A stretch of DNA of 45,523 bases, taken from the NCBI GenBank assembly GCA_002269645.1, contig NIVC01001710.1, positions 201,632 through 247,154 on the forward strand, given 5' to 3'. Position numbers and translations under genes: made by a program. The stretch comes from Macrostomum lignano. Its lineage: Eukaryota. Shown one piece after another: positions 3,994-43,197 of the stretch (position 1 is the first letter of the stretch; each line of letters opens with the position of its first letter). A model generated the notes under the pieces. It worked only from the letters and a program-made list of their open reading frames with translations. It did not search any database and was not told the origin of the DNA.

Positions 3994-6900
3994 TCAGCCG
4001 TCGGGCTTGTAGTCCGGGTACAGGGTGCGCACGTGCAGGCTGTCCGGCGGCGACTCGGACTCGAGCAGGCGCCAGTTGACGTCCTCAAAGTAGGAATAGC
4101 GGATAACCTCGCGGACCAGAGGCCGGCTCGATGGGTCCTGGCGCAGCAGGGACTTCAACAGTTTGGCCAGGGCCTCGTCCTGGGACCCGGGGTGGCAGGC
4201 GTCGCACAGGTGGAATCGCCATTCGGGCTTGGCGGAGTTGAGAAACTTGCTCCACATGTGCGAGTTCGATGAAATGTAGATCTCGGCGATGAAGAAGCCG
4301 AATAGCCAGGCGTCAATTCTTATGAAGGAAATAGCACGGGGCCTTATGAGTATCTGGGATGCAGATTTCTGTCTGCGCCCACCTAAGAGACAGGGCAACC
4401 AAGAGACAGGGGCAACCAAGAGACAGGGGCAACCAAGAGACAGGGGCAACCAAGAGACAGGGGCAACCAAGAGACAGGGGCAACCAAGAGACAGGGGCAA
4501 CCAAGAGACAGGGGCAACCAAGAGACAGGGGCAACCAGGAGAATTGGGCAACCAAGAGACATGGACAACCACCAAGAGGACAAATTTCTGCAAGCGTCAC
4601 GGCAAAGCTGCAACTAGCGCCAGCAGTCTCACTTGTAATCGTTGACCTTCCCGCCAAGCACCAGGCACTCGGGCGGATAGTACTGCATGGTAGTGACCCG
4701 CCGGTTAGGCACATATTCATCTTTATTCGACTTGCACTCGACAGCCAGGCCGAAGTCGGCCAGCTGAGGGACGCCTCGATGATCGATGAGTACATTGTCA
4801 GCCTTGATGTCCTTGTGGCAGATGCTGATCTTGTGCAATCTGAACACGGCGTCGATGATGCAGGAGATGTAATATTTGATGAAGCGCGATGGCAGTATGC
4901 CCACCTCGCGTTTGATCACCTGCCAGAAAGGCGGAATTAGTCGTTTAATAATGTCACATGAGCTGTCAGCAATGGTCGAAATTAAATAGATTATTATATA
5001 AATAAACAATGTAATGTAATAACAGTCTTCATCAAAAGACACAACATAAATTCTTCATGCAGTCTTCATCATAAGACATGACGACCCTAAGGTCTCACAC
5101 AAGACACGACCTTAAGGCGTTACCCCAAGGCACGACCTCAAGGCCTCACCCCAAGACACGACCTCAAGGTCTCACCCCAAGACACGACCTCAAGGTCTCA
5201 CCCTCAAGACACGACCTCGACCTCAATGTCTCACCCCAAGACGCGACCTCAAGGCCTCACCCCAAGACACGACCTCAAGGCCTCACCCCAAGATACGACC
5301 TCAAGGTCTCACCCCAAGACACGACCTCAAGGTCTCACCCTCAAGACACGACCTCGACCTCAATGTCTCACCCCAAGACGCGACCTCAAGGCCTCACCCC
5401 AAGACACGACCTCAAGGCCTCACCCCAAGATACGACCTCAAGGCCTCACACCAAGACACGACCTCAAGGCCTCACCCCAAGACACGACCTCAAGGCCTCA
5501 CCCCAAGATACGACCTCAAGGCCTCACACCAAGACACGACCTCAAGGTCTCACCCCAAGACACGACCTCAAGGTCTCACCCTCAAGACACGACCTCGACC
5601 TCAATGTCTCACCCCAAGACGCGACCTCAAGGCCTCAACCCAAGACACGACCTCAAGGCCTCACCCCAAGGCACGACCTCAAGGCCTCACCCCAAGACAC
5701 GACCTCAAGGCCTCACCCCAAGGCACGACCTCAAGGCCTCACCCCAAGGCACGACCTCAAGGCCTCACCCCAAGACACGACCTCAAGGTCTCACCCCAAG
5801 ATACGACCTCAAGGCCTCACACCAAGACACGACCTCAAGGCCTCACCCCAAGACACGACCTCAAGGCCTCACCCCAAGATACGACCTCAAGGGCTCACAC
5901 CAAGACACGACCTCAAGGTCTCACCCCAAGACACGACCTCAAGGTCTCACCCTCAAGACACGACCTCGACCTCAATGTCTCACCCCAAGACGCGACCTCA
6001 AGGCCTCAACCCAAGACACGACCTCAAGGCCTCACCCCAAGGCACGACCTCAAGGCCTCACCCCAAGACACGACCTCAAGGCCTCACCCCAAGGCACGAC
6101 CTCAAGGCCTCACCCCAAGGCACGACCTCAAGGCCTCACCCCAAGACACGACCTCAAGGTCTCACCCCAAGACACGACCTCAAGGTCTCACCCTCAAGAC
6201 ACGACCTCGACCTCAATGTCTCACCCCAAGACGCGACTTCAAGGCCTCAACCCAAGACACGACCTCAAGGCCTCACCCCAAGACACAACCTCAAGGCCTC
6301 ACCCCAAGGCACGACCTCAAGGCCTCACCCCAAGACACGACCTCAAGGCCTCACCCCAAGGCACGACCTCAAGGCCTCACCCCAAGGCACGACCTCAAGG
6401 CCTCACCCCAAGACACGACCTCAAGGCCTCACCCCAAGACACGACCTCAAGGCCTCACACCAAGACACGACCTCAAGGCCTCACACCAAGACACGACCCC
6501 AACTGTCCACACAGTCCTCACCTTAAGAGACGAATGCTTGGCCTTGTACATGACTGAAATGAAGAACTTATCAGTCATATAATAGACTAGAAGGTGCGAT
6601 ATAAAACGCGATTCGCGTTGCGCAATGACTTGCAGATCAGCTTTAAGTTGGTAACGCTCCATTCGGGCCTTGCAGGAGCTGTGCATGCACACTTTCATAG
6701 CCAGACTGGACGAGTGCTGGCGTCGGCGAACAAATAGAACGAAACCCTGGCCTGAAGTGTCAGTTTTTATAGCATTATCAATTTAATCTTCTCCACAGAC
6801 TGCTATAACACTCGTGCTCGTAACTGATTGAAGCCTACTGGTAAATAATAGCAATTAAAAATTCACAATTGCCTGGATCAGTCACTTTGGCCGAAGCCAG

Positions 6901-7397
6901 TGCAATGAGCTTTTATTCCCTCATTAGGCCTTACCACCAACGAATATCCGACGATCCTTCCGCTGCAGCACGTACTCGGGCATCTGCCATTTCTTAGCCC
7001 CGTCGGCGTACCTAACCGAGTCGGACACGACCTCGGCAAACAGATCGTTGATATTAAGCGTGCTGACAACCTTCATGAACTCCTTCTTGTCCATGTTGGC
7101 CCAGTCTATTTTCAGGTTGTGATTATTGGCGTCGCTGTTCTTAACGCAGCCGATTCCACGCGACGGCCCCTGATCGAGGTCCGACGCGGCCAAGTCGTGG
7201 GAGAAGCTGAAGCAGATGCCTCGGGCGGAGCTACGGTTTGTGTAGACCAGGGCGGGGCCCGCCGACGCCTCCCTGTGCAGGACGACAGCGCTGGCGGCGG
7301 TGCTGGCATCGTCGTTGCAGCAATCTTCTGCAGGCTGATTGTTCAGCTCCACTAGGGGGGCAGCTTCCTTTGTCGGTGAGCCCGTCTCGCATTTCAA
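3994..7397 (-). CDS. Divergent AGC-like Ser/Thr protein kinase, 4 exons; start codon uncertain
   Basis: Exons are ~7397-6935, 6751-6522, 4919-4633 and 4318-3994, with GT-AG introns of phase 1, 0 and 2 (1305 nt, in frame). Motifs in order: RIFVGGQGFV (Gly loop), AMK, SRFISHLL..FISVMYK (hinge), HKDIKADN, DFG, YYPPE, KIDAWLFG, and YFEDVNWRLLE (AGC-type tail). The ORF begins at TTG with an in-frame TGA five codons upstream. Confidence 0.9.
4385..4560. repeat. Minisatellite, 17-bp unit (caagagacaggggcaac), ~10 copies, in kinase intron 3
   Basis: Direct periodicity; lies within intron 4319-4632. Confidence 0.95.
5078..6500. repeat. Minisatellite, 26-bp unit (acacgacctcaaggcctcaccccaag), ~50 copies with a recurring longer variant, in kinase intron 2
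   Basis: Direct periodicity and a 26-aa translation period. The variant containing ctcgacctcaatg recurs about five times. Confidence 0.95.
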
Positions 7398-8249
7398 TGC
7401 TCCTCCTTTTCATGTCGGGGATTGAAGGGGGAGCCAATTTTTGGCGATTGAGAAACAAATAGAGGACTTCGGTCAGCGGTCCGTCAGCATGCTCAGCTAT
7501 TAGCGCTAATTGGCAAGTCAGCTGCAGCCCCGAATCGTACGCTTAATAAGCTAAACTGAAATAGGGGAAATATCTTCTTATGCTCCTAATAACGCATATA
7601 TTTAATAAGTAGATACGTGAGGAAGCTTATTTGCGGGCGTCGGAATCGAATCCTGCCATAGACACTAGCGAGTCTTGCGAACAGACAGTGGCGCTTCTTT
7701 AGAAGTGAGTTTTATAATTTATGTCAATTGAGAAAAGTCTTGAATTGGTATACAGTAATTTCTTTAATCGAACAGCCCCCCAAAACACATGCATTCCATA
7801 CGTGCCAACACCAGAATCCAGAAGTCTACATGATCGAACACACGTGCACGCAAGACAGCAATCGACCAAAAAAACTAAAAAATAAGGCGATGCCAATTTA
7901 GGAAGAATCCTTGTTTTTCCTCTTAGCGTAAAAATTCAATGATTATTCCATCTAAAAAATAAATAAAATAATTCTAATTATTTTACTGACAGCAGTTGAC
8001 AGCAGGTTCCAAAATAATTCATTTTTTTAGCATGCGCTGAAATTAATTTGAAAACATGCTCACCGATATGTATCGAAAAATATGTAAGTGCGTACACATC
8101 GTAGGTGTTTATGAAGCACTGCTGATTCTTTTTACATACGCAACACTGATATACGATCATTGATTTTTTCTGTGCAAAAACTTACAAAGATAAGGTAAAC
8201 CGTAACAAAATGGGGCGAATGCGTCAAACTTATTTTGTGGCAAAAAGTG

Positions 8250-8322
8250 AGCCGCTAGGGAGGATCGAACTCCCGACCCCCGGTTTACTAGACCAGTGCT
8301 CTAGCCACTGAGCTATAGAGGC
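8250..8322 (-). tRNA. tRNA-Thr (anticodon AGT)
   Basis: Minus strand reads GCCTCTA-TA-GCTC-AGTGGCTA-GAGC-A-CTGGT-CTAGTAA-ACCGG-GGGTC-GGGAG-TTCGATC-CTCCC-TAGCGGC-T. This is a full 73-nt cloverleaf with one U4:C69 mismatch in the acceptor stem. A T5 Pol III terminator follows 4 nt downstream (8242-8246). Confidence 0.9.
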
Positions 8323-13000: not shown

Positions 13001-15341
13001 CCAAAGTGGCGCCACTGACTCCATCCGAAAGTGGCGCCCCCGACTCCGAAAGTGGCGCCCCTGACTCCACCCGAAAGTGGTGCCCCTGACTCCATCCAAA
13101 AGTGGCGCCCCCGACTCCCAAAGTGGCGCCACTGACTCCATCCGAAAGTGGCGCCCCCGACTCCGAAAGTGGCGCCCCTGACTCCACCCGAAAGTGGTGC
13201 CCCTGACTCCATCCGAAAGTAGCGCCCCCGACTCCCAAAGTGGCGCCACTGACTCCATCCGAAAGTGGCGCCCCGACTCCCAAAGTGGCGCCCCTGACTC
13301 CACCCGAAAGTGGTGCCCCTGACTCCATTCGAAAGTGGCGCCCCTGACTCCCAAAGTGGCGCCACTGACTCCATCCGAAAGTGGCGCCCCCGACTTTCAA
13401 AGTGGCGCCACTGACTCCATCCGAAAGTAGCGCCCCCGACTCCCAAAGTGGCGCCCCTGACTCCATCCGAAAGTGGCGCCCCTGACTCCATCTGAAAGTG
13501 GCGCCCCTGACTCCCGAAGTGGCGCCTTTGACTCCACCCGAAAGTGGCGCCCCCGACTCCGAAAGTGGCGCCCCTGACTCCACCCGAAAGTGGTGCCCCT
13601 GACTCCATCCGAAAGTGGCGCCCCCGACTCCCAAAGTGGCGCCACTGACTCCATCCGAAAGTGGCGCCCCCGACTCCGAAAGTGGCGCCCCTGACTCCAC
13701 CCGAAAGTGGTGCCCCTGACTCCATCCAAAAGTGGCGCCCCCGACTCCCAAAGTGGCGCCACTGACTCCATCCGAAAGTGGCGCCCCCGACTCCGAAAGT
13801 GGCGCCCCTGACTCCACCCGAAAGTGGTGCCCCTGACTCCATCCGAAAGTAGCGCCCCCGACTCCCAAAGTGGCGCCACTGACTCCATCCGAAAGTGGCG
13901 CCCCCGACTCCCAAAGTGGCGCCCCTGACTCCACCCGAAAGTGGTGCCCCTGACTCCATTCGAAAGTGGCGCCCCCGACTCCCAAAGTGGCGCCACTGAC
14001 TCCATCCGAAAGTGGCGCCCCCGACTTTCAAAGTGGCGCCACTGACTCCATCCGAAAGTGGCGCCCCCGACTCCCAAAGTGGCGCCCCTGACTCCATCCG
14101 AAAGTGGCGCCCCTGACTCCATCTGAAAGTGGCGCCCCTGACTCCCGAAGTGGCGCCTTTGACTCCACCCAAAAGTGGCGCCCCTGACTCCATCCGAAAG
14201 TGGCGCCCCTGACTCCATCTGAAAGTAGCGCCCCTGACTCCCAAATTGGCGCTTTTGACTCCATCCGAAAGTGGCGCCCCTGACTCCATCTGAAAGTGGC
14301 GCCCCTGACTCCATCCGAAAGTGGCGCCCCTGACTCCATCTAAAAGTGGCGCCCCTGACTCCCGAAGTGGCGCCTTTGACTCCATCCGAAAGTGGCGCCC
14401 CTGGCTCCATCTGAAAGTGGTGCCCCTGACTCCCAAAGTGGCGCCCCTGACTCCATCTGAAAGTGGCGCCCCTGGTTCCATCTGAAAGTGGTGCCCCTGA
14501 CTCCCAAAGTGGCGCCCCTGACTCCATCCGAAAGTGGTGCCCCTGACTCCAAAAGTGCACTGGTGACTCCCAGAGTCACTTTGGATGTCATAATAGCAAA
14601 GCAACAGCCGCTATCGGCAGTGTTTTCAATCCGTATTTCCGCAGTTCTGATAGCCTCAGGTCTGCTAAGCATAGTGCCGAAGCCGCACCCTCTGTTTGGC
14701 ATCGTGTTCGTTGCCGGCGGATTCGTTATCTTCATCCCGGGAAGTGAGTTCGGCAACATTGATTATTGTCTTTGATTAACATATATTATAGCAATAATTG
14801 CAACGGCACCCTGGCCCAACCATTCGGCGTCATCGTCTCACAACCAGCGCTGACGGCAATTCTGCGCATTCCGCTGGCTCCTGAGCACACACAAGCGCGC
14901 CAATACTGTACGCAGGCACAGCACTCATGCACACGCTCTCACAGGGTGTACAGCGGCCCTGACTGTCTAATCGTCAGGCATGTACACTCTCTGTGCCATG
15001 GGGGTTGGCCCTCCTGGCTTGTGAATCGCACGACAACCTTCCGGCTAAACTTCGTGCCCAAGCCTCAGATGAATGCGTTTCAGCACGGAATCGAACCAGG
15101 GGTCGCGAGAGCCAGATGGCGTTTACCGCTGAGCTGCCCTGCCCCTGAATGTGCTTTACTTAAAGCTTTCAATCCAGTAACTGCTCCCGACTTATGTTAG
15201 AGTTAAGGTAGTGCTTTTGACCAAATATTGATAATTCCAACCGCCCTCTCACCGCCCGCAGTCTACTATGTGACCTACGTCATTCGGGCCTATCTTGGTC
15301 ACGACGGCTATTTGTTCGATCATTTGCCTTCCATGGACTGA
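10066..15341 (+). CDS. TMEM134: TMEM134-like (DUF872 family) two-transmembrane protein; N-terminus uncertain
   Basis: Exons are 10066-10142 (tentative), 12423-12659 (acceptor uncertain), 12735-12811, 14645-14743 and 15262-15341, all phase-consistent. The spliced C-terminus is SCLVHPEVQRHSRLILVATLFCLVGAVLIASGLLSIVPKPHPLFGIVFVAGGFVIFIPGIYYVTYVIRAYLGHDGYLFDHLPSMD*. This matches the family pattern HP...-TM1-TM2(PG)-Y...A..G..G...LP. The pre-TM1 HPxxQ motif favours TMEM134 over TMEM230. The symbol rests on recalled motifs, not a search. Confidence 0.75.
10250..12430. repeat. Minisatellite, 24-bp unit (gtgggatctcttgtcatcctcagt), ~90 copies, in a TMEM134-like intron
   Basis: Direct periodicity. A small insertion near 10770 shifts the register. 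Confidence 0.97.
12865..14555. repeat. Composite minisatellite of 21- and 25-bp units (gaaagtggcgcccctgactccatcc) with a 117-bp higher-order repeat
   Basis: Units of 21+25+25+21+25 = 117 bp are readable from ~12910, matching the 39-aa translation period. It lies in intron 12812-14644. Confidence 0.95.
14790..15145 (-). mobile_element. Putative tRNA-derived SINE, near-full-length copy (family A)
   Basis: The minus-strand head has an A-box-like AGCTCAGCGGTA (15135-15124) and a B-box GGTTCGATTCC (15097-15087). The body is homologous to ~42036-42295 and ~34420-34520, and the 3' end is AT-rich. Confidence 0.65.
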
Positions 15342-36100: not shown

Positions 36101-39100
36101 CCGAGTTTTAAGCTGGTTAGACAGTTGAAACAGAAGGAAAGAAATATTGAGTGTAGCATCTGGACTAACTATCAGTCATGGACATCTAGGTAATAAAATT
36201 GGGATTGAACACCAATCATTCAAGGACATCTAGCAAACCAAATTCGGATTCGACACTAACCATTATTCAAGGACATCTGACAAATCATTTCGGACTGGAC
36301 ATAGACCTAAGTGAAATTCTTCTCTAGTCTCAAAGCCATCTGACAAATAAGAGCTGGACTGGAAAATGATCAACATTCATTAGAATTTGTTTCTCACTAT
36401 TCACAAGGACATCTATCTAGTAGAAACTTGGACTAGCGTCTGCAAAAAACCTTGAACAATATTAGTAATTATGTATAATTATGTAGGCAACAGAAATGCA
36501 TCTAGAAAATGCCACAGATATAGAAGCTCCACATGGCGCTATGAAAAGAAACTACTTCCGTATTAAAAAGGATATCCGCATATATTTAGCCGGCTAAACA
36601 GACAAATTTACCGTGTTGTCTCGGACAGCTCCCGGCAGGGGTCGTTGGGATAAAACCGGATCGCCAGGAACAGCTGACAGGACTTCTCCCCAACCAGGTC
36701 GGACAGACCGCCACCTGCAGGGGATCCGGCAGAGGGGGGGGGGTGGAGGCGATGAGCAAATTGAGACAACAGAATGGGAAGTCTGGCCCCATTCCAAATA
36801 ACGAATGCGGGAGGGTATAAGAAATCGATGCATGGAGAAGCGAGAAGGGCAGACAAACACCGGGGCGAGAGAGTCCCTCCATTAAACTGGGACTCTTTGG
36901 GATTTTAAACTGGTTTTAAGCAATAAGCATGGAACCATGCATCGTTGTTGGACGATGTCGCCGAAGGCGCTACGGCATGGTGGCCGCAGCCCTCATGAAA
37001 TCATTATTTAATGAGATACTCCCAAGAGGTGACGTCGGAGAAACACCCAGAAACACAGAAATGCGGCATCAAGGAAGCCAAGAAGCTGGCCGCATCAGAC
37101 CGGTTGCTACAGTCAAAAGCCCGCACAGTTTAGCTAAAAAATCATTGCCTCGCTTTTTTAAAACGAAAAAGCCGCGCGGAACTTCTTCTATTAGAAGAGG
37201 AAATTTAAGGAAATTGGACCAAAGTGATCGGAACAAGCAGAAAACGGATGGCCAGAAGAGTGAGTGTTTCCATTCTTAGACAGCTAACGCAGGAATTCGA
37301 GCTCAATTCTCTTCAAATAAGCGCGCAGATTGCTCCTCGCCGCTGCAAAAACCAATTTCCAAGTCTTGGCGCAAAAGCAGCCCAAAACTGGCTGCTGAAA
37401 GCTTCTGACTGAGAATAGGAAACAAATCTATTTCCCCTAGACAGGCCAGAGTCTGGCTATATTTGGGAACCCGTCTTTTTTATCTCAAAGCTAAGAAGCT
37501 TTCAATAACTATAAAAGCAAAAGATAAAAAGCCGCAACACGGATGCTAACGATGTTGCTTTTAGAAGAGCCAAAAATGACGTGGAAATTAATGTCGTCTC
37601 CCACCTCCACCGAAAAGCAGAGACACCTAAGAGAAACAACCATTCTAAAAGTAATTAACTCTCTTACTGAACTGCATTGACCCCTGTCTGTACTACCCGA
37701 AGCCTTGCATTGACCCCTGTCTGTACTACCCGAAGCCTTGCATTGACCCCTGTCTGTACTACCCGAAGCCTTGCATTGACCCCTGTCTGTACTACCCCAA
37801 GCCTTGCATTGACCCCTGTCTGTACTAGGTGAAGCCTTGCATTGACCCCTGTCTGTACTAGGTGAAGCCTTGCATTGACTCCTGTCTGTACTGAACGAAG
37901 CCTTGCATTGATCCCTGTCTGTACTGAACGAAGCCTTGCATTGACCCCTGTCTGTACTGAACGAAGCCTTGCATTGATCCCTGTCTGTACTGAACGAAGC
38001 CTTGCATTGACCCCTGTCTGTACTGAACGAAGCCTTTCATTGACCCCTGTCTGTACTGAACGAAGCCTTGCATTGACCCCTGTCTGTACTGGGCGAAGCC
38101 TTGCATTGACCCCTGTCTGTACTGGGCCAAGCGTAGCCATGACCTCCCTAGAAGTGGCTCGTACCAATTTCCTTTACCCTAACTATGAAGCAATAAATTC
38201 AGGAAATGAACGTTTCCGAAAAGCCAGCCAAACGTGGCGGAACTGCAACACCCGATAGAGTTGCCAAATCGCAAATAGACGGATGTTCAGAAAAACACCG
38301 TGAGAGAAAGAACCCAATGTACGTTGCTGAAAACGACACAATAGACGGAAAACTTACGACAGCATTTAACTAAAGAGTGGACACTCTTGCGAACGTTGAC
38401 CCATTGCTGAAATTGGGGAAAGGGTTTAAACAGAGTTTACACGAGATTCTAGAGACACAGCAGAGTTTCAGGTGCAAAAACTCACCAGAGTCTTCCTCGA
38501 GTCCTGGTATCTCAGGCCAAAGAACTGCTGCTCGGGCACGCCGATGGAGTTCAGTACAGCGCGGAGCAGATCCTGGCCCTTGTGGTTGCCCTGCGGGACG
38601 GGGAAGGCAGCGGGAACCACAAAAGTTGACTGCCAGCCCAACCCTTACACTAACCCTAACCTAATCTTCGGCAGTCCAATGTCAGGTGCACGAGTCAGCG
38701 ATGGTTAAATTAGTAAAAGCGATACTTATAGTTATAATAGACTGTATGGTCATCGCGGATGAAGGAATAGAATGGATTGCTAATCTATAGCCATCATTAT
38801 TGAAGGAATAGAATGGATTGCTAATCTATAGTCATCGCGGATGAAGGAATAGAATGGATTGCTAATCTATAGTCATCGCGGATGAAGGAATAGAATGGAT
38901 TGCTAATCTATAGCCATCATTATTGAAGGAATAGAATGGATTGCTAATCTATAGCCATCATTATTGAAGGAATAGAATGGATTGCTAATCTATAGCCATC
39001 GCGGATGAAGGAATAGAATGGATTGCTAATCTATAGCCATCATTATTGAAGGAATAGAATGGATTGCTAATCTATAGTCCCATCACAGATGAAGGAATAG

Positions 39101-42100
39101 AATGGATTGCTAATCTATAGCCATCGCGGATGAAGGAATAGAATGGATTGCTAATCTATAGCCATCGCGGATGAAGGAATAGAATGGATTGCTAATCTAT
39201 AGTCATCGCGGATGAAAGAATAGAATGGATTGCTAATCTATAGTCCCATCACAGATGAAGGAATAGAATGGATTGCTAATCTATAGCCATCGCGGATGAA
39301 GGAATAGAATGGATTGCTAATCTATAGCCATCGCGGATGAAGGAATAGAACGGATTGCTAATCTATAGCCATCACTGATGAAGGAATAGAATGGATTGCT
39401 AATCTATAGCCATCGCGGATGAAGGAATAGAATGGATTGCTAATCTAGATAGTCCCATCACGGATGAAGGAATAGAATGGGTTGCTAATCTATGGTCCCA
39501 TCACGGATGAAGGAATAGAATGGATTGCTAATCTATAGCCATCAATGATGAAGGAACAGAATGGATTGCAGACAGGCCCAAGCTCAATCAGAAAGTACAC
39601 CAGCTATCAGTAATGACGTGAAGCGACACCTGGCGGAGGGGGCTGAAAATTCAATCACTCTCAGGCAGGCTGACAGACCTAAGTGACACGGATGATTTTT
39701 GCTCCGTAAACGCGGGGTTTAAAAATGCAGCCAGCCCAGGCGGCTCACGGATGCGGCAGGTGACAGGCGGATCAACGCCGCGCACATCCGCGATCCGCGA
39801 CAGTTCAGTTGCTATGCGGGAATGAGATGCAGCTAGCGGGGAGGCTGGGAGTTCCAGCTCAAGCCGCCCGTGACCAGCTGCGATAGGGGCGCTACAATTC
39901 CATGTGCGCGGTAACATTCCTTTTTGGGACTCGTGCATGGAGATTGGTTTCGGTTTTGCTGAGCAATTCTTGCCTGAGTGCCAACGCCAAAGGCACAAAT
40001 CAAGCCAGATTGTACAGAACTCACCAACAATACCATTAGCAATTTCAGTCTTCGCATTAAGGGACCGTCTTTACAGGTTGTAGGCTAGTGAGGGGGTTTT
40101 AGCTTAGTTATGGGTGGTAGCCTAATTATGGGTGGTAGCCTAATTATGGGTGGTAGCCTAATTATGGGTGGTAGCCTAATTATGGGTGGTAGCCTAATTA
40201 TGGGTGGTAGCCTAGTGATGGTGTTGTAGCCTATTGGTCAGAGCGTCGGACTCACGACCTAAAGGTGGTTAGGGGTTCGATTCCCGATCCACTCGGAAAA
40301 AATTTTGTCCTTGAGCAAGACACTGAGCTCTACATTGCTTCAGTTCACCCAGCCGTAAAATGGGTGCCAGCATTAGCTGGGGTAATTGAGGCTGTGTGTG
40401 GCGACCCTGCCTGTGTAATTGGGGCAGCTGTAATTAATTATTATTATTATTATTATTACAGCTCGTACGAGTAGGAACTGGCCCAGATCGTACAGAAATT
40501 TATAAAAATCTAGTTTGCATTAGGACAGCACAATGTCGATCCCGCTAAAAGTGCATCATTTTAGTTTAGACAGAAGAATGAAGCCACCGTGGATAAAATA
40601 ATTAAATGAACAAGTCGCAAACAATGGCTTCATCACAACCAGGGGAACAGGCAATTCAGCAAGTGTAAAATTAGCATTATTCATATGAAAACAGAAAAAT
40701 GCATGACAGGGTTGAAGAGTGGAGAGAAAGGAAAGAGTGGAAACCAATTGATTCTTAATTCAACTGCTGTAGACATGCAGTTGCAGTCTATTTTATATTT
40801 TTCTTCTTTGCTTACACAAGCCACTGCTATGCTCGCACTGTCTATGGGAACATAAACCATGGGAAGAGACGAGGGGGAGTCAAGACTAACGCCTGGTGAT
40901 ATCTTATTAAAATGATATCTAGACCTTGTACATTGCACACACAGTGCTGAGCATTGCTGGGCCAGCCTCCCAGATCCTCAGTTGCTGGGCCAGCCTCCCA
41001 GATCCTCAGTTGCTGGGCCAGCCTCCCAGATCCTCAGTTGCTGGGCCACTACCTCCCAGATCCTCAGTTTCTGGGCCAGCCTCCCAGATCCTCAGTTGCT
41101 GGGCAAGCCTCCCAGATCCTCAGTTGCTGGGCCAGCCTCCCAGAGTGTCAGTTGCTGGGCCAGCCTCCCAGAGTGTCAGTTGCTGGGCCAGCCTCCCAGA
41201 GTGTCAGTTGCTGGGCCAGCCTCCCAGAGTGTCAGTTGCTGGGCCAGCCTCCCAGATCCTCAGTTTCTGGGCCAGCCTCCCAGATCCTCAGTTTCTGGGC
41301 CAGCCTCCCAGATGCTCATTTTCTGGGCCAGCCTCCCAGATCCTCAGTTTCTGGGCCAGCCAGCCTACCAGATCCTCAGTTGCTGGGCCAGCCTCCCAGA
41401 TCCTCGCCCGTAAAGCCTTCATTCTCTCAGCCTTTTTAACGCTTCATGGGCTTTCCCCAAAGCCAAATTATGCACCAGTGTAGCCATATAATCTATTTAA
41501 TAAGCGCTTACTTTCTTCGATGCGAGCTGCAAACAGGATCTCCAGGCCTGTATTCGCAGCACACAATAGCCGTTGCATCCACTGTGAAATTATTCTATTA
41601 TTCTATTTTTCGCCTTTACGAATTTCTGCCATTCAGCTCGCAGTGAATTGAATAATGGCTTTTATGTAGCTTTAAGAATAACTGCGAGGATTCGGCAGCT
41701 ATCTGCCCAGAAATGCGCGTTTCTTCTCTGCAGGCGGCGGCTTGTCTTTTTTGATTAGACTGCTACTGTCTGAATTGGCGATTAGTTAACATAAACCATG
41801 GAAGAGAGGAGGAGGGAGTCAAGACTAACGCCTGGTGATATTAATCGTTATTATAATAATATCTATAGACCTTGTACATTGCACACACAGTGCTGGATCC
41901 AGATCTTCACTTGCTGGGGCAGCAATTTCTCGTAAAAGTGAAAAGCCTCGGGTCTTGCCGTTTGCCGGGAAAGGCACTGCTGCCCTGGTCCTGATACTAA
42001 ATAAATATTATAAAATAATATTTGAAGGAGGGCTGCGGGCACCATGGCAACGCCTTCGGCGATATCGTCGCACTACCAACGCTGAATCAGTTCTGTCCAC

Positions 42101-43197
42101 TCAGCTGGCTCCTGAGCACACACAAGAGCGCCAATACTGTACTCAGGCACAGCACTCACACACAGGCTCTCACAGGGTGTACATCGGCCCTTGTGACTTC
42201 TGATCTTCAGGCGTGTGCACTCTCTGTGCCTTGGGGCTTGGCCATCACGGGTGTGACTCGCACGAACAAAATGAATGTGTTTGCGCACGGAATCTGCTCT
42301 GCCGCCCCATCCTTCCCAACGCAAATTAAGCAACGGCAGGCGAGACCGCACGGTCTCAAAGTCGGCGACACAGTGCTACGGCGCCGACTAAATCCGCTCA
42401 AGGGCGAGACTCCGTTCGAGTGGGCACCCTGGCTGGTCGAGAAGGTCAAGGGCGACTCGATGACCATTCGGCAGGGCGCCAGAGTTTGCAGGCGGCACTG
42501 CACTGACCTGAAGCGGGCAGCGCCGGATACTGAGCCCGATTTTCCTGCCGGGGAGCCCGCACCTCCGATCCTACAAGCTGCAGGGAGCGAACCCGCGACC
42601 TCTCCAATTGCGCTGCGACCACACCCCCGAGAGGCCAAGGTGAGAGTGAACTATAGGGTTTAACTATAACTCGCGCTTGGCAGACTGACGCTAATATCTT
42701 TGGGTGCACTTTGATTTTGCTTTTGCATCGCGAGCTTGCGAAAAGATTGTCACTCTCTGGCTAATGCACTATAATCAGTAAAATTTTGTTGAATAATGTT
42801 GCTTCTTTGCAATATTTATTTGTGGTAGCTTTCATTTTTTAAAAAACCTTTTGCAGTTGCACTTTTAATCCGATATGAGGAGAGATGTAGTGTACGCTCT
42901 GCGCGGTAATAATGTACGGCTGGCTTGGTCGATGAATTCGTAGCAATATTCTTATTACGCAATACTCTCGTGCCTATAAATATATTGAATTGAGCAGTCG
43001 GCTCAGTTAAGTACATCGTTTTTCTCTCGCCAAAACTAAATAGCTAGTCTGAGTCATTACAATCCCATCCCGATCCTAACTAAAACTTTTTCCCACACTC
43101 TACTCACGGGCAGGGAGAAGGCCTTCTTATTCCCGTCCAACAGTTGGACGTAGAAGTCCACCTCTCGGGTGGAGGCGGCGCTAAATATGCTGCACAT
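21128..43197 (-). CDS. FERM-domain (band 4.1 superfamily) protein, 17 coding exons, ~702 aa, with a disordered tail and C-terminal class I PDZ-binding motif (-QTLV*)
   Basis: Exons: 43197-43108, 38590-38486, 38406-38358, 36714-36612, 36019-35922, 34675-34561, 34390-34303, 34224-34130, 32608-32545, 30653-30562, 30198-30004, 28634-28563, 28450-28397, 26454-26308, 24135-23644, 23049-22950, 21277-21128. All introns are GT-AG and phase-consistent; the total is 2109 nt. FERM motifs: VQLLDG, FFGLRY, QWV, RFYPNDP..TR, LQ..GDFD, AEYQFL..LEGYG, FWPRIKK, LWETCCEHLEFFR. The tail exons (11-17) are less certain than the FERM exons. Confidence 0.9.
21341..21950. repeat. Two-block 21-bp minisatellite (gctggctgtggggtggtgggt, then gctggctatgggttgctgggt) in the last FERM intron
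   Basis: Direct periodicity; the unit switches at ~21540. Confidence 0.92.
22457..22815. repeat. Degenerate AT-rich ~20-22-bp tandem repeat (attagtctaatgacaccc..)
   Basis: A recurrent attagtctaatgacac core is visible. Confidence 0.85.
23095..23622. repeat. 35-bp minisatellite (aatgtgaacagccaggatcacagtgtgaaatcggc), ~15 copies, filling FERM intron 15
   Basis: Direct periodicity; it occupies most of intron 23050-23643. Confidence 0.95.
24200..24600. repeat. 24/25-bp minisatellite (taatccctgccatagttatccccat)
   Basis: Direct periodicity. Confidence 0.92.
25100..26090. repeat. Purine-rich 22-bp minisatellite (gagatgagacggagaagacagg)
   Basis: Direct periodicity with degenerate edges; pyrimidine-rich on the FERM sense strand. 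Confidence 0.95.
26555..28310. repeat. Purine/G-rich 26-bp minisatellite (gggagagacggtgggtagaggcagaa)
   Basis: Direct periodicity with three interspersed variants. Confidence 0.95.
28669..29915. repeat. 24-bp minisatellite (tactcatcactgaggcactgatgc) with a 29-bp variant confined to the left half
   Basis: Essentially pure 24-mers from ~29290 to 29910. The variant ending ...gatcctgcaa occurs only at 28670-29250. Confidence 0.97.
30310..30500. repeat. Short degenerate repeat (agggtgttgcagccccctttc..), ~6 copies
   Basis: The core recurs in FERM intron 10. Confidence 0.8.
30795..31088. repeat. 30-bp repeat (ctactccaccccagtctactctaccacaag), a dimer of related ~15-mers
   Basis: About 7 near-perfect copies at 30880-31088 with a degenerate left flank. 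Confidence 0.9.
31474..32252. repeat. 25-bp minisatellite (ttcagtgagtccccgcccccatacc), ~31 copies
   Basis: Direct periodicity; G-rich on the FERM sense strand. Confidence 0.96.
32640..34075. repeat. 22-bp minisatellite (gcttgtgtttaagctaggcaat) with a 45-bp dimeric higher-order block at ~32655-33235
   Basis: Alternating 23-bp (..aagctaaggtatt) and 22-bp (..gagctaggcaat) units in the left part; it fills FERM intron 8. Confidence 0.95.
34420..34520 (-). mobile_element. Internally deleted, degenerate copy of SINE family A in FERM intron 6
   Basis: Minus strand carries cgacccctggttc (B-box region) joined to gtgctcag...cagaattgccg.cagcgctg, both shared with the 14790-15145 copy. Confidence 0.5.
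34735..35815. repeat. 31-bp minisatellite (gggggagatcctgaactcacagctacatcta), ~35 copies, in FERM intron 5
   Basis: Direct periodicity. Confidence 0.97.
37668..38125. repeat. 33-bp minisatellite (gcattgacccctgtctgtactgaacgaagcctt), ~14 copies with a polar variant gradient
   Basis: The variable segment changes in blocks along the array: accc, then aggtg, gaac, gggc. Confidence 0.95.
38745..39570. repeat. ~41-bp minisatellite (gatgaaggaatagaatggattgctaatctatagccatcgcg), ~20 copies
   Basis: A constant ~30-bp core plus a few recurring short linker variants. Confidence 0.95.
39978..40079 (-). ncRNA. Candidate spliced-leader (SL) RNA gene or SL pseudogene, flatworm type
   Basis: Minus strand reads AACCTGTAAAGACGGTCCCTTAATGCGAAGACTGAAATTGCTAATG|GT. 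It has a 5' hairpin ACC(T)GT/ACGGT and an exon ending in ATG directly before GT. An Sm-like GATTTG and a terminal GTGCC/GGCAC hairpin follow; total ~102 nt. It closely matches my recollection of the Macrostomum lignano SL exon, which was not verified by a search. Confidence 0.65.
40108..40215. repeat. 18-bp tandem repeat (ttatgggtggtagcctaa) x6 abutting the SINE head
   Basis: Six near-perfect copies. Confidence 0.92.
40219..40458 (+). mobile_element. tRNA-derived SINE with a CORE-like central domain and (TTA)n tail (family B)
   Basis: The head is tRNA-like (GTAGCCTATTGGTCAGAGCG...GGGTTCGATTCCC). The centre GTCCTTGAGCAAGACACT...CACCCAGCCGTAAAATGGG resembles the CORE-SINE motif CCTTGGGCAAG.CACTT...TGTAAAATGGG. 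The tail is ttattattatt. Confidence 0.8.
40955..41405. repeat. 28-bp minisatellite (cccagatcctcagttgctgggccagcct), ~16 copies
   Basis: Direct periodicity. Confidence 0.95.
42000..42295 (-). mobile_element. 5'-truncated copy of SINE family A
   Basis: Colinear with 14805-15092 (for example gctggctcctgagcacacacaag.gcgccaatactgtac). Similarity ends inside the B-box at cacggaatc, and an AT-rich tail lies near 42000-42025. Confidence 0.6.
42300..42663 (+). mobile_element. Ty3/Gypsy-type retrotransposon remnant: C-terminal end of integrase
   Basis: The translation LKVGDTVLRRRLNPLKGETPFEWAPWLVEKVKGDSMTIRQGARVCRRHCTDLKR fits the post-catalytic SH3-like end of Gypsy Pol. It is followed by a Pro-rich linker and LRPHPR...VNY*. 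No RT, DDE core or LTR is seen. Confidence 0.7.

Follow-up and report, generated by a model that had tools for sequence, protein, structure and literature searches.

The first intron of a FERM gene in the flatworm Macrostomum lignano contains a minus-strand segment that resembles the gene for a spliced-leader (SL) RNA, and we asked what this element is. The initial annotation of the stretch analyzed here (the window, 45,523 nucleotides of contig NIVC01001710.1, positions 201,632 to 247,154) had proposed either a second SL variant or an SL orphon. The SL exon that it gave agrees with the published 35-nt leader of M. lignano, CGGTCTCTTACTGCGAAGACTCAATTTATTGCATG (PMC8629364); the leader listed for M. 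cliftonense and for M. hystrix is (G)CCGTAAAGACGGTCTCTTACTGCGAAGACTCAATTTATTGCATG (Table S3 of PMC10468722). The canonical M. lignano SL RNA gene is 109 nt long (Ustyantsev & Berezikov 2021, PMC8629364) and occurs in eight exact copies when the genome is deduplicated (PMC8629364), and studies of transcript 5' ends report a single SL only (PMC8629364; PMC12582326). The search for these genes took 100% leader matches only (PMC8629364), so diverged copies such as the FERM-intron element were not catalogued. For comparison we used a pair of canonical SL RNA genes from other samples, L001 (615-724) and L004 (1589-1698), which come from other Macrostomum-like species and are not the canonical gene of M. 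lignano itself. Both carry the leader, GTAAGA, stem-loop II, AUUUUUAG and stem III. They are identical at 50/57 positions 3' of the donor (88%), which gives a first view of conservation outside the leader within the genus.

The leader-homologous block lies at 40034-40077 on the minus strand (CCTGTAAAGACGGTCCCTTAATGCGAAGACTGAAATTGCTAATG), and the minus-strand letters from 40079 to 39970 read AACCTGTAAAGACGGTCCCTTAATGCGAAGACTGAAATTGCTAATG|GTATTGTTGGTGAGTTCTGTACAATCTGGCTTGATTTGTGCCTTTGGCGTTGGCACTCAGGCAA. An exon-wide alignment of 40077-40034 with the canonical leader gave 38/44 identities with 2 indels (z = 15 against shuffles). As had been described, 28/30 of the first leader positions are identical to the published SL, ignoring one extra T, and the block then diverges but keeps its terminal ATG (40036-40034) and the following GT (40033-40032). 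The similarity to the real SL sequence was also significant by BLAST, with 30/34 identities to a canonical SL RNA gene at E ~1e-6 and a significant core at 40074-40041, and a 28-nt leader pattern matched once in the window and not at all in 100 shuffles. Judged by these alignments, 40077-40034 is truly homologous to the Macrostomum spliced leader, with a similarity far beyond chance. The 3' tag of the element leader, GACTGAAATTGCTAATG, differs from the canonical GACTCAATTTATTGCATG, and the element leader is not identical to the SL borne by mRNAs. A C-to-A change creates an extra ATG at 40055-40057 (minus strand) that is not in the canonical leader and shares the frame of the terminal ATG (ATG CGA AGA CTG AAA TTG CTA ATG). 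The 5' hairpin claimed for a leader starting with AACC is present, though weak (-1.6 kcal/mol versus -4.9 for the canonical leader); the AACC is mostly the antisense 5' end of a short interspersed element (SINE; GGTTGTAG...), so the leader homology begins at (C)TGTAAAG. A leader scan of viral contigs gave no match, and a full-text literature search with leader substrings returned unrelated primers only. The element was called solitary, and it is the only one of its kind in ~101 kb of M. lignano sequence comprising the window, an older paralogous region (L002) and a second genomic copy of the locus (L003), where its occurrence represents the same locus.

The element lies in sense orientation within FERM intron 1 (38591-43107, minus strand), as the initial annotation had it. 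A tblastn search with the gene model P0004 placed FERM exon 1 at 43197-43108, with 100% identity and the donor GTGAGT, whereas exon 2 starts at 38590 in phase 0 behind the acceptor CCCGCAG|GGC; both exons match the M. lignano protein A0A1I8FRF2, and the gene product matches Pfam FERM_N (E = 1.8e-6). A protein search with exons 2-4 gave no match, and a wider set of exons later matched FERM proteins. The NCBI model BOX15_Mlig000943g3 is labeled 'partial' and begins at the first base past the AG of the exon-2 acceptor. The window's kinase exons share 100% identity with an M. lignano protein, which marks the window as M. lignano DNA. The older paralogous region contains the kinase, with neither a FERM gene nor an SL-like element. 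The exact products of the window's open reading frames, including one that starts inside the leader, are not on record, and neither are those of the UniRef-only models P0001 and P0004.

The sequence 3' of the leader gave a different picture. The block is followed by the donor-like GTATTG (40028-40033, minus strand) in the context AATG|GTATTG (40037-40028). The AUG and GU of an SL exon end are thus present in a weaker donor context than the GTAAGA of the canonical genes, without the canonical AAG at +3 to +5; the M. lignano SL donor is given as GTAAG (PMC8629364). Further downstream on the same strand are a putative Sm-like heptad, AUUUGUG (39994-40000), and a flatworm-style CCUUUGG (39993-39987), both of motif types found in PMC12582326. 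The fold contains a 5-bp 3' hairpin, GUGCC-UUUGGCGUU-GGCAC (39978-39996), which the covariance model described below aligns to stem III. The Sm site had been doubted for its count of just three U residues, but the real weakness does not lie there. AUUUGUG is the heptad of the Sm site of U1 snRNA. Of random 64-nt pieces cut from the window, just 0.2% contain such a heptad followed by a perfect 5-bp hairpin, by a criterion chosen post hoc. The post-donor half resembles canonical SL RNA at chance level, like shuffled sequence (z <=1.2 in eight scoring schemes). Folding, suggested earlier as a check, did not help the case for a gene, since the element fold is no more stable than shuffles (z = -0.18, compared with -3.43 for a canonical gene). 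The donor-bearing stem I retains 4/7 core pairs in the canonical register by manual count; the minimum-energy fold offers an alternative donor-leader pairing of 6 bp with two G-U pairs. Stem-loop II, which precedes the Sm motif, is not in the element fold, and the covariance model R1, built from the canonical Macrostomum SL RNA genes, retains only 3/6 of its modeled pairs. With this model the window element scored 12.0 bits (E ~0.7) and the canonical genes 126-129 bits, and the copy of the element in L003 gave no match. Rfam scans of the locus gave no match at the gathering threshold or at E up to 10; these negatives are uninformative, because a canonical SL RNA gene gave no Rfam match either.

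On its 5' side the element abuts repeats. A tRNA-derived SINE with an (ATT)n tail lies head-to-head with the leader at 40223-40455 (plus strand) and is also present in L003; it belongs to a dispersed family with two more copies in L002 (82-84% identity). Between it and the leader, and abutting the latter, is an 18-bp minisatellite of amplified SINE 5' ends (40080-40233; 40100-40233 according to TRF), whose units match the SINE 5' end GGTTRTAGCC. In both locus copies the SINE or the derived array reaches leader base 1-3. The published flatworm SL RNA gene set excludes loci at <=500 bp from mobile elements or without a hairpin before the Sm site (PMC12582326), and in the window the array comes to within 1-3 nt of the leader, with the SINE proper 146 bp off, distances at which the element would be excluded. 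The hexamer TTACAG (plus strand) at 40071-40076 recurs after the SINE tail at 40456-40461 (40456-40462 with the preceding G) and may be a target-site duplication, a weakly supported assignment because the hexamer is short and TTA is also the tail unit. Removal of the SINE would restore a leader start GCTGTAAAGACGG, compared with the canonical GCCGTAAAGACGG. The flank upstream of the SINE, which would have adjoined the element before the SINE arrived, showed no significant similarity to the region upstream of the canonical gene in L001. A second pair of direct repeats is 15 nt long, with the upstream copy TTCTGTACGATCTGG at 40483-40497, beyond the SINE, and the downstream copy TTCTGTACAATCTGG at 40005-40019 (both minus strand). 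The copies match at 14/15 positions and are also found in L003; by our own arithmetic a 14/15 repeat so near the element has a chance expectation of ~0.002.

We aligned the second genomic copy (L003, contig NIVC01001928.1) to the window with MAFFT. The flanks differ at 2.2%. The leader is identical in both copies, and the leader with 50 further nt has no substitutions in 96 aligned nt versus 2.1 expected, a difference that is not significant (P = 0.12). L003 lacks 14 nt (TTTGTGCCTTTGGC; 39986-39999, minus strand) spanning the AUUUGUG/CCUUUGG motifs and the 5' arm of the 3' hairpin. The Sm-like site and 3' stem-loop described at the outset are present in the window copy, whereas the motif and the hairpin's 5' arm are missing from its counterpart. 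This indel may reflect relaxed constraint on the Sm-like motif and the hairpin arm.

Hence, we favor, with some reservation, the reading of the element as an inactive relic of an SL RNA gene, that is, an SL orphon or pseudogene; the evidence leans toward the hedge in the initial annotation, a possibly non-functional orphon. The locus combines significant SL homology with the loss of features related to function, the combination by which a pseudogene or orphon is recognized. An SL RNA gene copy, whole or partial, would have arrived in sense orientation in FERM intron 1. The tRNA-derived SINE inserted at the leader's very first bases, and its 5' end then expanded into the minisatellite. The donor consensus has drifted from GUAAGA to GUAUUG, the donor-bearing stem appears weakened and no stem-loop remains before the Sm site. 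The SINE would have cut the element off from its upstream region, including any promoter and the original start site, and for that reason the element would be transcribed only passively, in the intron of the FERM pre-mRNA, and removed with that intron, giving no leader to other mRNAs. Against an inactive relic stand the parts that were kept: the 5' leader, terminal AUG, GU, U-rich Sm-like heptad and adjoining hairpin survive around a diverged middle, a pattern expected of a working paralogue under selection. The 0.2% frequency of heptad plus hairpin in random pieces, with its post hoc criterion, and the lack of substitutions in the leader and the 50 nt beyond it, which is not significant, point the same way. 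Nor does uniform decay of a canonical gene explain an 86% leader beside a 3' half at chance level; the element would be either an old, diverged paralogue or a locus to which the leader part alone was ever copied.

The latter possibility, that only the leader and a few flanking bases entered the intron, is tentative and, in our view, rather unlikely; the element would still be inactive. The inserted piece could derive from the cDNA of a transcript trans-spliced to the SL, or could be a short fragment of filler, and the Sm-like motif and hairpin would be host-intron sequence that resembles SL RNA by chance. Such an insertion would fit the limitation of significant similarity to the leader, given that canonical 3' halves are 88% conserved between species. 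It would also fit the 15-nt repeat (40497-40483 and 40019-40005), which resembles a target-site duplication and brackets ~81 nt, made up of 20 nt, the leader sequence and 14 nt past the donor; the Sm-like motif and the hairpin would then lie beyond the insert. From flatworms and other taxa, both re-integrated transcripts that had been trans-spliced and loci with a leader alone near mobile elements have been described (PMC12582326). Several observations speak against this origin. Next to the leader stands GTA, which the gene has there too, and no obvious mRNA body, and neither a poly(A) nor an A-rich tail was found. In a search of 5.8 billion proteins that covered the M. lignano proteome, the frames after the leader had no homologue and no parent protein, and the 20 non-leader nt on the 5' side of the leader, which make the bracketed 81-nt piece an odd one, are unexpected for cDNA of a capped RNA. 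A chance Sm-like motif and hairpin in the right place is improbable too (~0.2%, by the post hoc criterion). We also considered the post-leader sequence as a retrocopied mRNA body: its first residues, MVLLVSSVQSGLICAFG, resemble a signal peptide, but no frame has a homologue, and the candidate was rejected. The 74-aa length of the post-leader open reading frame is within chance.

A functional second SL RNA gene, which would have its own start, bind Sm proteins at AUUUGUG and supply some mRNAs with a variant leader of 44-46 nt that has an additional in-frame AUG, is very improbable on this evidence. In its favor, the window copy has leader homology, AUG, GU, the Sm-like heptad and the 3' hairpin in the correct order, donor and leader could pair in the alternative register (6 bp, two G-U), and the leader is unchanged between both locus copies; nematode SL2-type variants are likewise little like SL1 in the 3' half. 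These points are outweighed by the SINE and minisatellite, which fill positions -1 to about -380 of the element with a repeat number that differs between the two copies, by the missing stem-loop before the Sm motif and a fold equal to that of shuffles, by the covariance-model score of 12 bits versus 126-129, by the donor without AAG at +3 to +5, and by the loss of the Sm-like motif in L003. The 3' half at chance level, the one SL reported in 5'-end studies of M. lignano (PMC8629364; PMC12582326) and the single locus at which the variant was found, compared with eight exact canonical copies, add to this, and the proposal of a second SL gene was not borne out. Least credible of all is use of the element as an alternative 5' exon spliced in cis to FERM exon 2, mimicking a trans-spliced isoform (...GCTAATG|GGCAACCAC, in frame, M-G-N-H-K): although the leader lies 1.4 kb upstream of exon 2 in the sense direction, that exon begins in phase 0 and the partial BOX15_Mlig000943g3 model looks as expected for an isoform with an SL-borne AUG, we found no evidence for a start site or acceptor upstream of the leader, the donor GTATTG is weak, and canonical SL trans-splicing explains the partial model more simply. 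Even taken together, a second, low-abundance SL RNA from the FERM intron and a cis leader exon on FERM exon 2 would be a marked surprise.

As a relic, the element would indicate that SL RNA-derived sequence has been scattered into introns of a free-living flatworm, that such copies are reshaped by SINEs and minisatellites, and that AUG-GU and Sm-like mimics can persist in them, which calls for caution in SL gene annotation and in pipelines that trim reads. Expression of the variant would give M. lignano a second leader, one with an upstream in-frame start codon, with consequences for translation from an SL-borne AUG. The extra AUG would prepend MRRLKLL to proteins starting at the leader AUG, and the variant leader would tag mRNA junctions with ...GCGAAGACTGAAATTGCTAATG. 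A second leader of this kind would have been missed by earlier surveys because these searched for exact matches to the canonical SL.

Among known systems, nematode SL2 genes have promoters, are expressed and conserved, and are used at operon-internal genes. The element shares with SL2-type variants a leader related to the main SL, a dissimilar 3' half, a putative Sm site and a kept hairpin, but several of its features argue against an SL2-like promoter, expression, conservation and use in operons. For genomic re-integration of SL-trans-spliced transcripts, PMC12582326 cites Slamovits & Keeling (2008) among others. The element resembles such loci in that what comes after the leader bears no relation to the 3' half of the SL RNA and in that a direct repeat brackets the leader, and differs from them in lacking poly(A) and an identifiable parent mRNA, in the GT after the leader and in the 20 non-leader nt on the 5' side inside the bracket. 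With the canonical Macrostomum SL RNA gene it has in common the leader (38/44, 28/30 at the 5' end), AUG followed by GU and, in the window copy, a U-rich motif and short hairpin near the 3' end. It differs from that gene in the leader's final 12-13 nt, which tag trans-spliced mRNAs and are altered by substitutions and two indels, in GUAUUG instead of GUAAGA, in the absent stem-loop II, in post-donor similarity that is not significant, in the SINE at its 5' end and in the single locus at which it was found, compared with eight exact copies. SL pseudogenes and leader-only loci by mobile elements have been reported in cestodes and trematodes (PMC12582326). Unlike the SL pseudogenes of these parasitic flatworms, the element resides in a free-living macrostomid, keeps AUG-GU and is not fused to a retrotransposon in the same orientation; like them, it shows no sign of use and combines lost motifs and structures with partial SL homology and an adjoining mobile element.

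The element is a spliced-leader (SL)-like minus-strand segment, similar to the published M. lignano leader. The minus strand at 40079-39970 reads AACCTGTAAAGACGGTCCCTTAATGCGAAGACTGAAATTGCTAATG|GTATTGTTGGTGAGTTCTGTACAATCTGGCTTGATTTGTGCCTTTGGCGTTGGCACTCAGGCAA, with the leader block at 40077-40034. The initial annotation gave the SL sequence correctly, and its count of 28 identities among the first 30 also holds. A 28-nt degenerate pattern matched once in the window and never in 100 shuffles, BLAST against a canonical gene gave 30/34 identities (E about 1e-6), and alignment of the whole leader gave 38/44 with two indels (z = 15). On these alignments, the SL-like observation is real and beyond chance. 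A C-to-A change creates an additional AUG (40057-40055) that shares its reading frame with the terminal AUG; the splice donor is GUAUUG in the element versus the canonical GUAAGA, and the 5' hairpin is less stable than the canonical one (-1.6 versus -4.9 kcal/mol).

On alignment with the M. lignano protein P0004 (A0A1I8FRF2), FERM exon 1 spans 43197-43108 at 100% identity and is followed by the donor GTGAGT, while exon 2 begins at 38590 after the acceptor CCCGCAG|GGC. Intron 1 is hence 43107-38591, in agreement with the sense-orientation placement proposed earlier. The FERM exons are also confirmed by Pfam (FERM_N, E = 1.8e-6) and by the M. lignano proteins P0003-P0006. The element within this intron is genuinely SL-derived and the only one of its kind in about 101 kb of M. 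lignano sequence, and the initial description of a solitary element holds.

For comparison, pattern scans of other samples yielded two canonical Macrostomum-type SL RNA genes. One is at 615-724 of L001 (JGI metagenome contig Ga0302322_100095745) and folds into the expected three stem-loops (z = -3.43). A 391-aa Na/K-ATPase-beta-like animal ORF (1747-2919) follows about 1 kb downstream, and a partial leader-start duplicate, cGCCGTAAAc, sits just upstream of the gene. The other, at 1589-1698 of L004 (JAGQZA010000190.1), is a perfect Macrostomum SL RNA gene on a contig assigned to a Flavobacteriaceae MAG, probably as flatworm contamination in a bacterial bin. The two genes have identical leaders and GTAAGACACCG, are 88% identical (50/57) after the donor, and have stem-loop II, AUUUUUAG and stem III in common. 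Similarity of the element to the canonical 3' half after the donor stayed at shuffle level in eight scoring schemes (z -1.2 to 1.2). A covariance model trained on the two canonical genes only scored these, its own training set, at 126-129 bits and the element at 12.0 bits (E about 0.7 in 109 kb), about the score of a canonical gene's antisense strand. The fold of the element was no more stable than shuffles (z = -0.18) and lacked a stem-loop before the Sm motif. The element fails the majority of tests for a functional SL RNA gene. The second SL gene of the initial annotation is not supported, and the evidence favors its other option: an inactive orphon or pseudogene is the best reading and somewhat the likelier one.

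The main rival, also inactive, is an insertion of the leader alone, which we consider possible though clearly less probable. A 15-nt direct repeat (14/15), TTCTGTAC[G/A]ATCTGG, at 40497-40483 and 40019-40005 flanks the leader when the SINE at the 5' end is set aside; it brackets about 81 nt, made up of the leader with 20 nt before it and 14 nt of sequence beyond the donor. It is present in the window and in L003 (NIVC01001928.1), a second genomic copy of the FERM locus that differs from the window by 2.2% substitutions in unique flanks, and our own calculation puts the number of such matches expected by chance so near the element at about 0.002. The repeat may be a target-site duplication; if so, the insert would comprise the leader part only, and the Sm-like motif and hairpin would be host-intron sequence. 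Against this, only 0.2% of 64-nt pieces drawn at random from the window have an Sm-like heptad with a perfect 5-bp hairpin immediately after it, by a criterion chosen post hoc that overstates the case. L003 shares the SINE and the leader with the window, and also the minisatellite array between them, which differs in repeat number. Missing from L003 are 14 nt (TTTGTGCCTTTGGC, window 39999-39986) that contain the Sm-like heptad AUUUGUG, the flatworm-style motif CCUUUGG and the 5' arm of the hairpin at the 3' end. No matter which of the two states came first, the SL RNA-like features of the 3' half are not constant between the two copies. The other 96 nt carry no substitutions, which is not significant (P = 0.12), and the L003 copy had no match to the covariance model.

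A functional variant SL is improbable on the test results, even with the hairpin and U-rich tract of the element placed at the correct positions of the covariance model. Use of the leader copy as an exon in cis would be more improbable still. A simple retrocopy of a trans-spliced mRNA is unsupported: GT directly follows the leader, no poly(A) tail was found after it, and no frame downstream of the leader had a homologue among 5.8 billion proteins, the M. lignano proteome included.

The 5' side of the element is occupied by a tRNA-derived SINE (40223-40455, plus strand) of a dispersed family with two further copies in L002 (NIVC01002267.1), an older paralogous region. Its core, TGAGCAAGACAC...CACCCAGC.GTAAAATGGGT, is reminiscent of the SINE core domains that are widely conserved in metazoans. 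The first 18 nt of the SINE (GGTTGTAGCCTA...) expanded into the neighboring 18-bp minisatellite (40080-40233), whose final and most degenerate unit abuts the leader. The AACC start noted initially is therefore present but is largely SINE sequence, not leader. TTACAG on the plus strand at 40071-40076 and 40456-40461 is a short putative target-site duplication of the SINE, overlapping its tail repeat; SINE removal would restore ...CGTACGAG|CTGTAAAGACGG, with the start GCTGTAAAG versus the canonical GCCGTAAAG. Whatever the target-site reading, positions -1 to about -380 relative to the leader are mobile-element sequence, and proximity to mobile elements has been a ground for excluding loci from true flatworm SL RNA genes (PMC12582326). 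A dispersed repeat is found at 14806-15033 and about 41835-42200 (FERM intron 1) of the window and at 1859-2057 and 9501-9732 of L002, and its ORFs have ...APEHTQ(E/A)RQYCTQAQHS... in common; a long ORF beside the intron-1 copy (42022-42663) had no Pfam match. Minisatellites make up about 49% of the window (23 arrays, 3031-45193, periods of 13-241 bp), mainly within FERM introns, with repeat numbers unequal between the window and L003.

A protein kinase gene occupies 3997-7409 (minus strand), and its exons match an M. lignano UniRef protein, named 'greatwall', at 100% identity, which identifies the window as M. lignano DNA. The element is therefore a diverged SL copy inside the genome of M. 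lignano, whose own SL is canonical. An older kinase paralogue (L002 10001-13643; 68% amino-acid identity) adjoins a BBL5-domain gene and has no FERM gene upstream. A tRNA-Thr(AGT) gene (8249-8322, minus strand) sits between the kinase gene and the FERM gene. The NCBI model BOX15_Mlig000943g3 is 'partial', and its first base directly follows the exon-2 acceptor AG (L003 6451, equal to window 38590). Canonical SL joined here would give ATG|GGC AAC CAC, in frame. Because the partial model starts at exon 2 and this junction is in frame, the data suggest a trans-spliced FERM isoform that would start at the SL AUG and lack the 30 residues of exon 1.

Overall, the element is of modest interest as a further example of an already known kind of SL-derived sequence. 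Flatworm SL RNAs conserve the 5' part of the leader, AUG-GU, an Sm-like motif and a hairpin around a variable middle (PMC12582326). The element has the same conservation pattern as these real SL RNAs, which would suit an old, once-functional paralogue.
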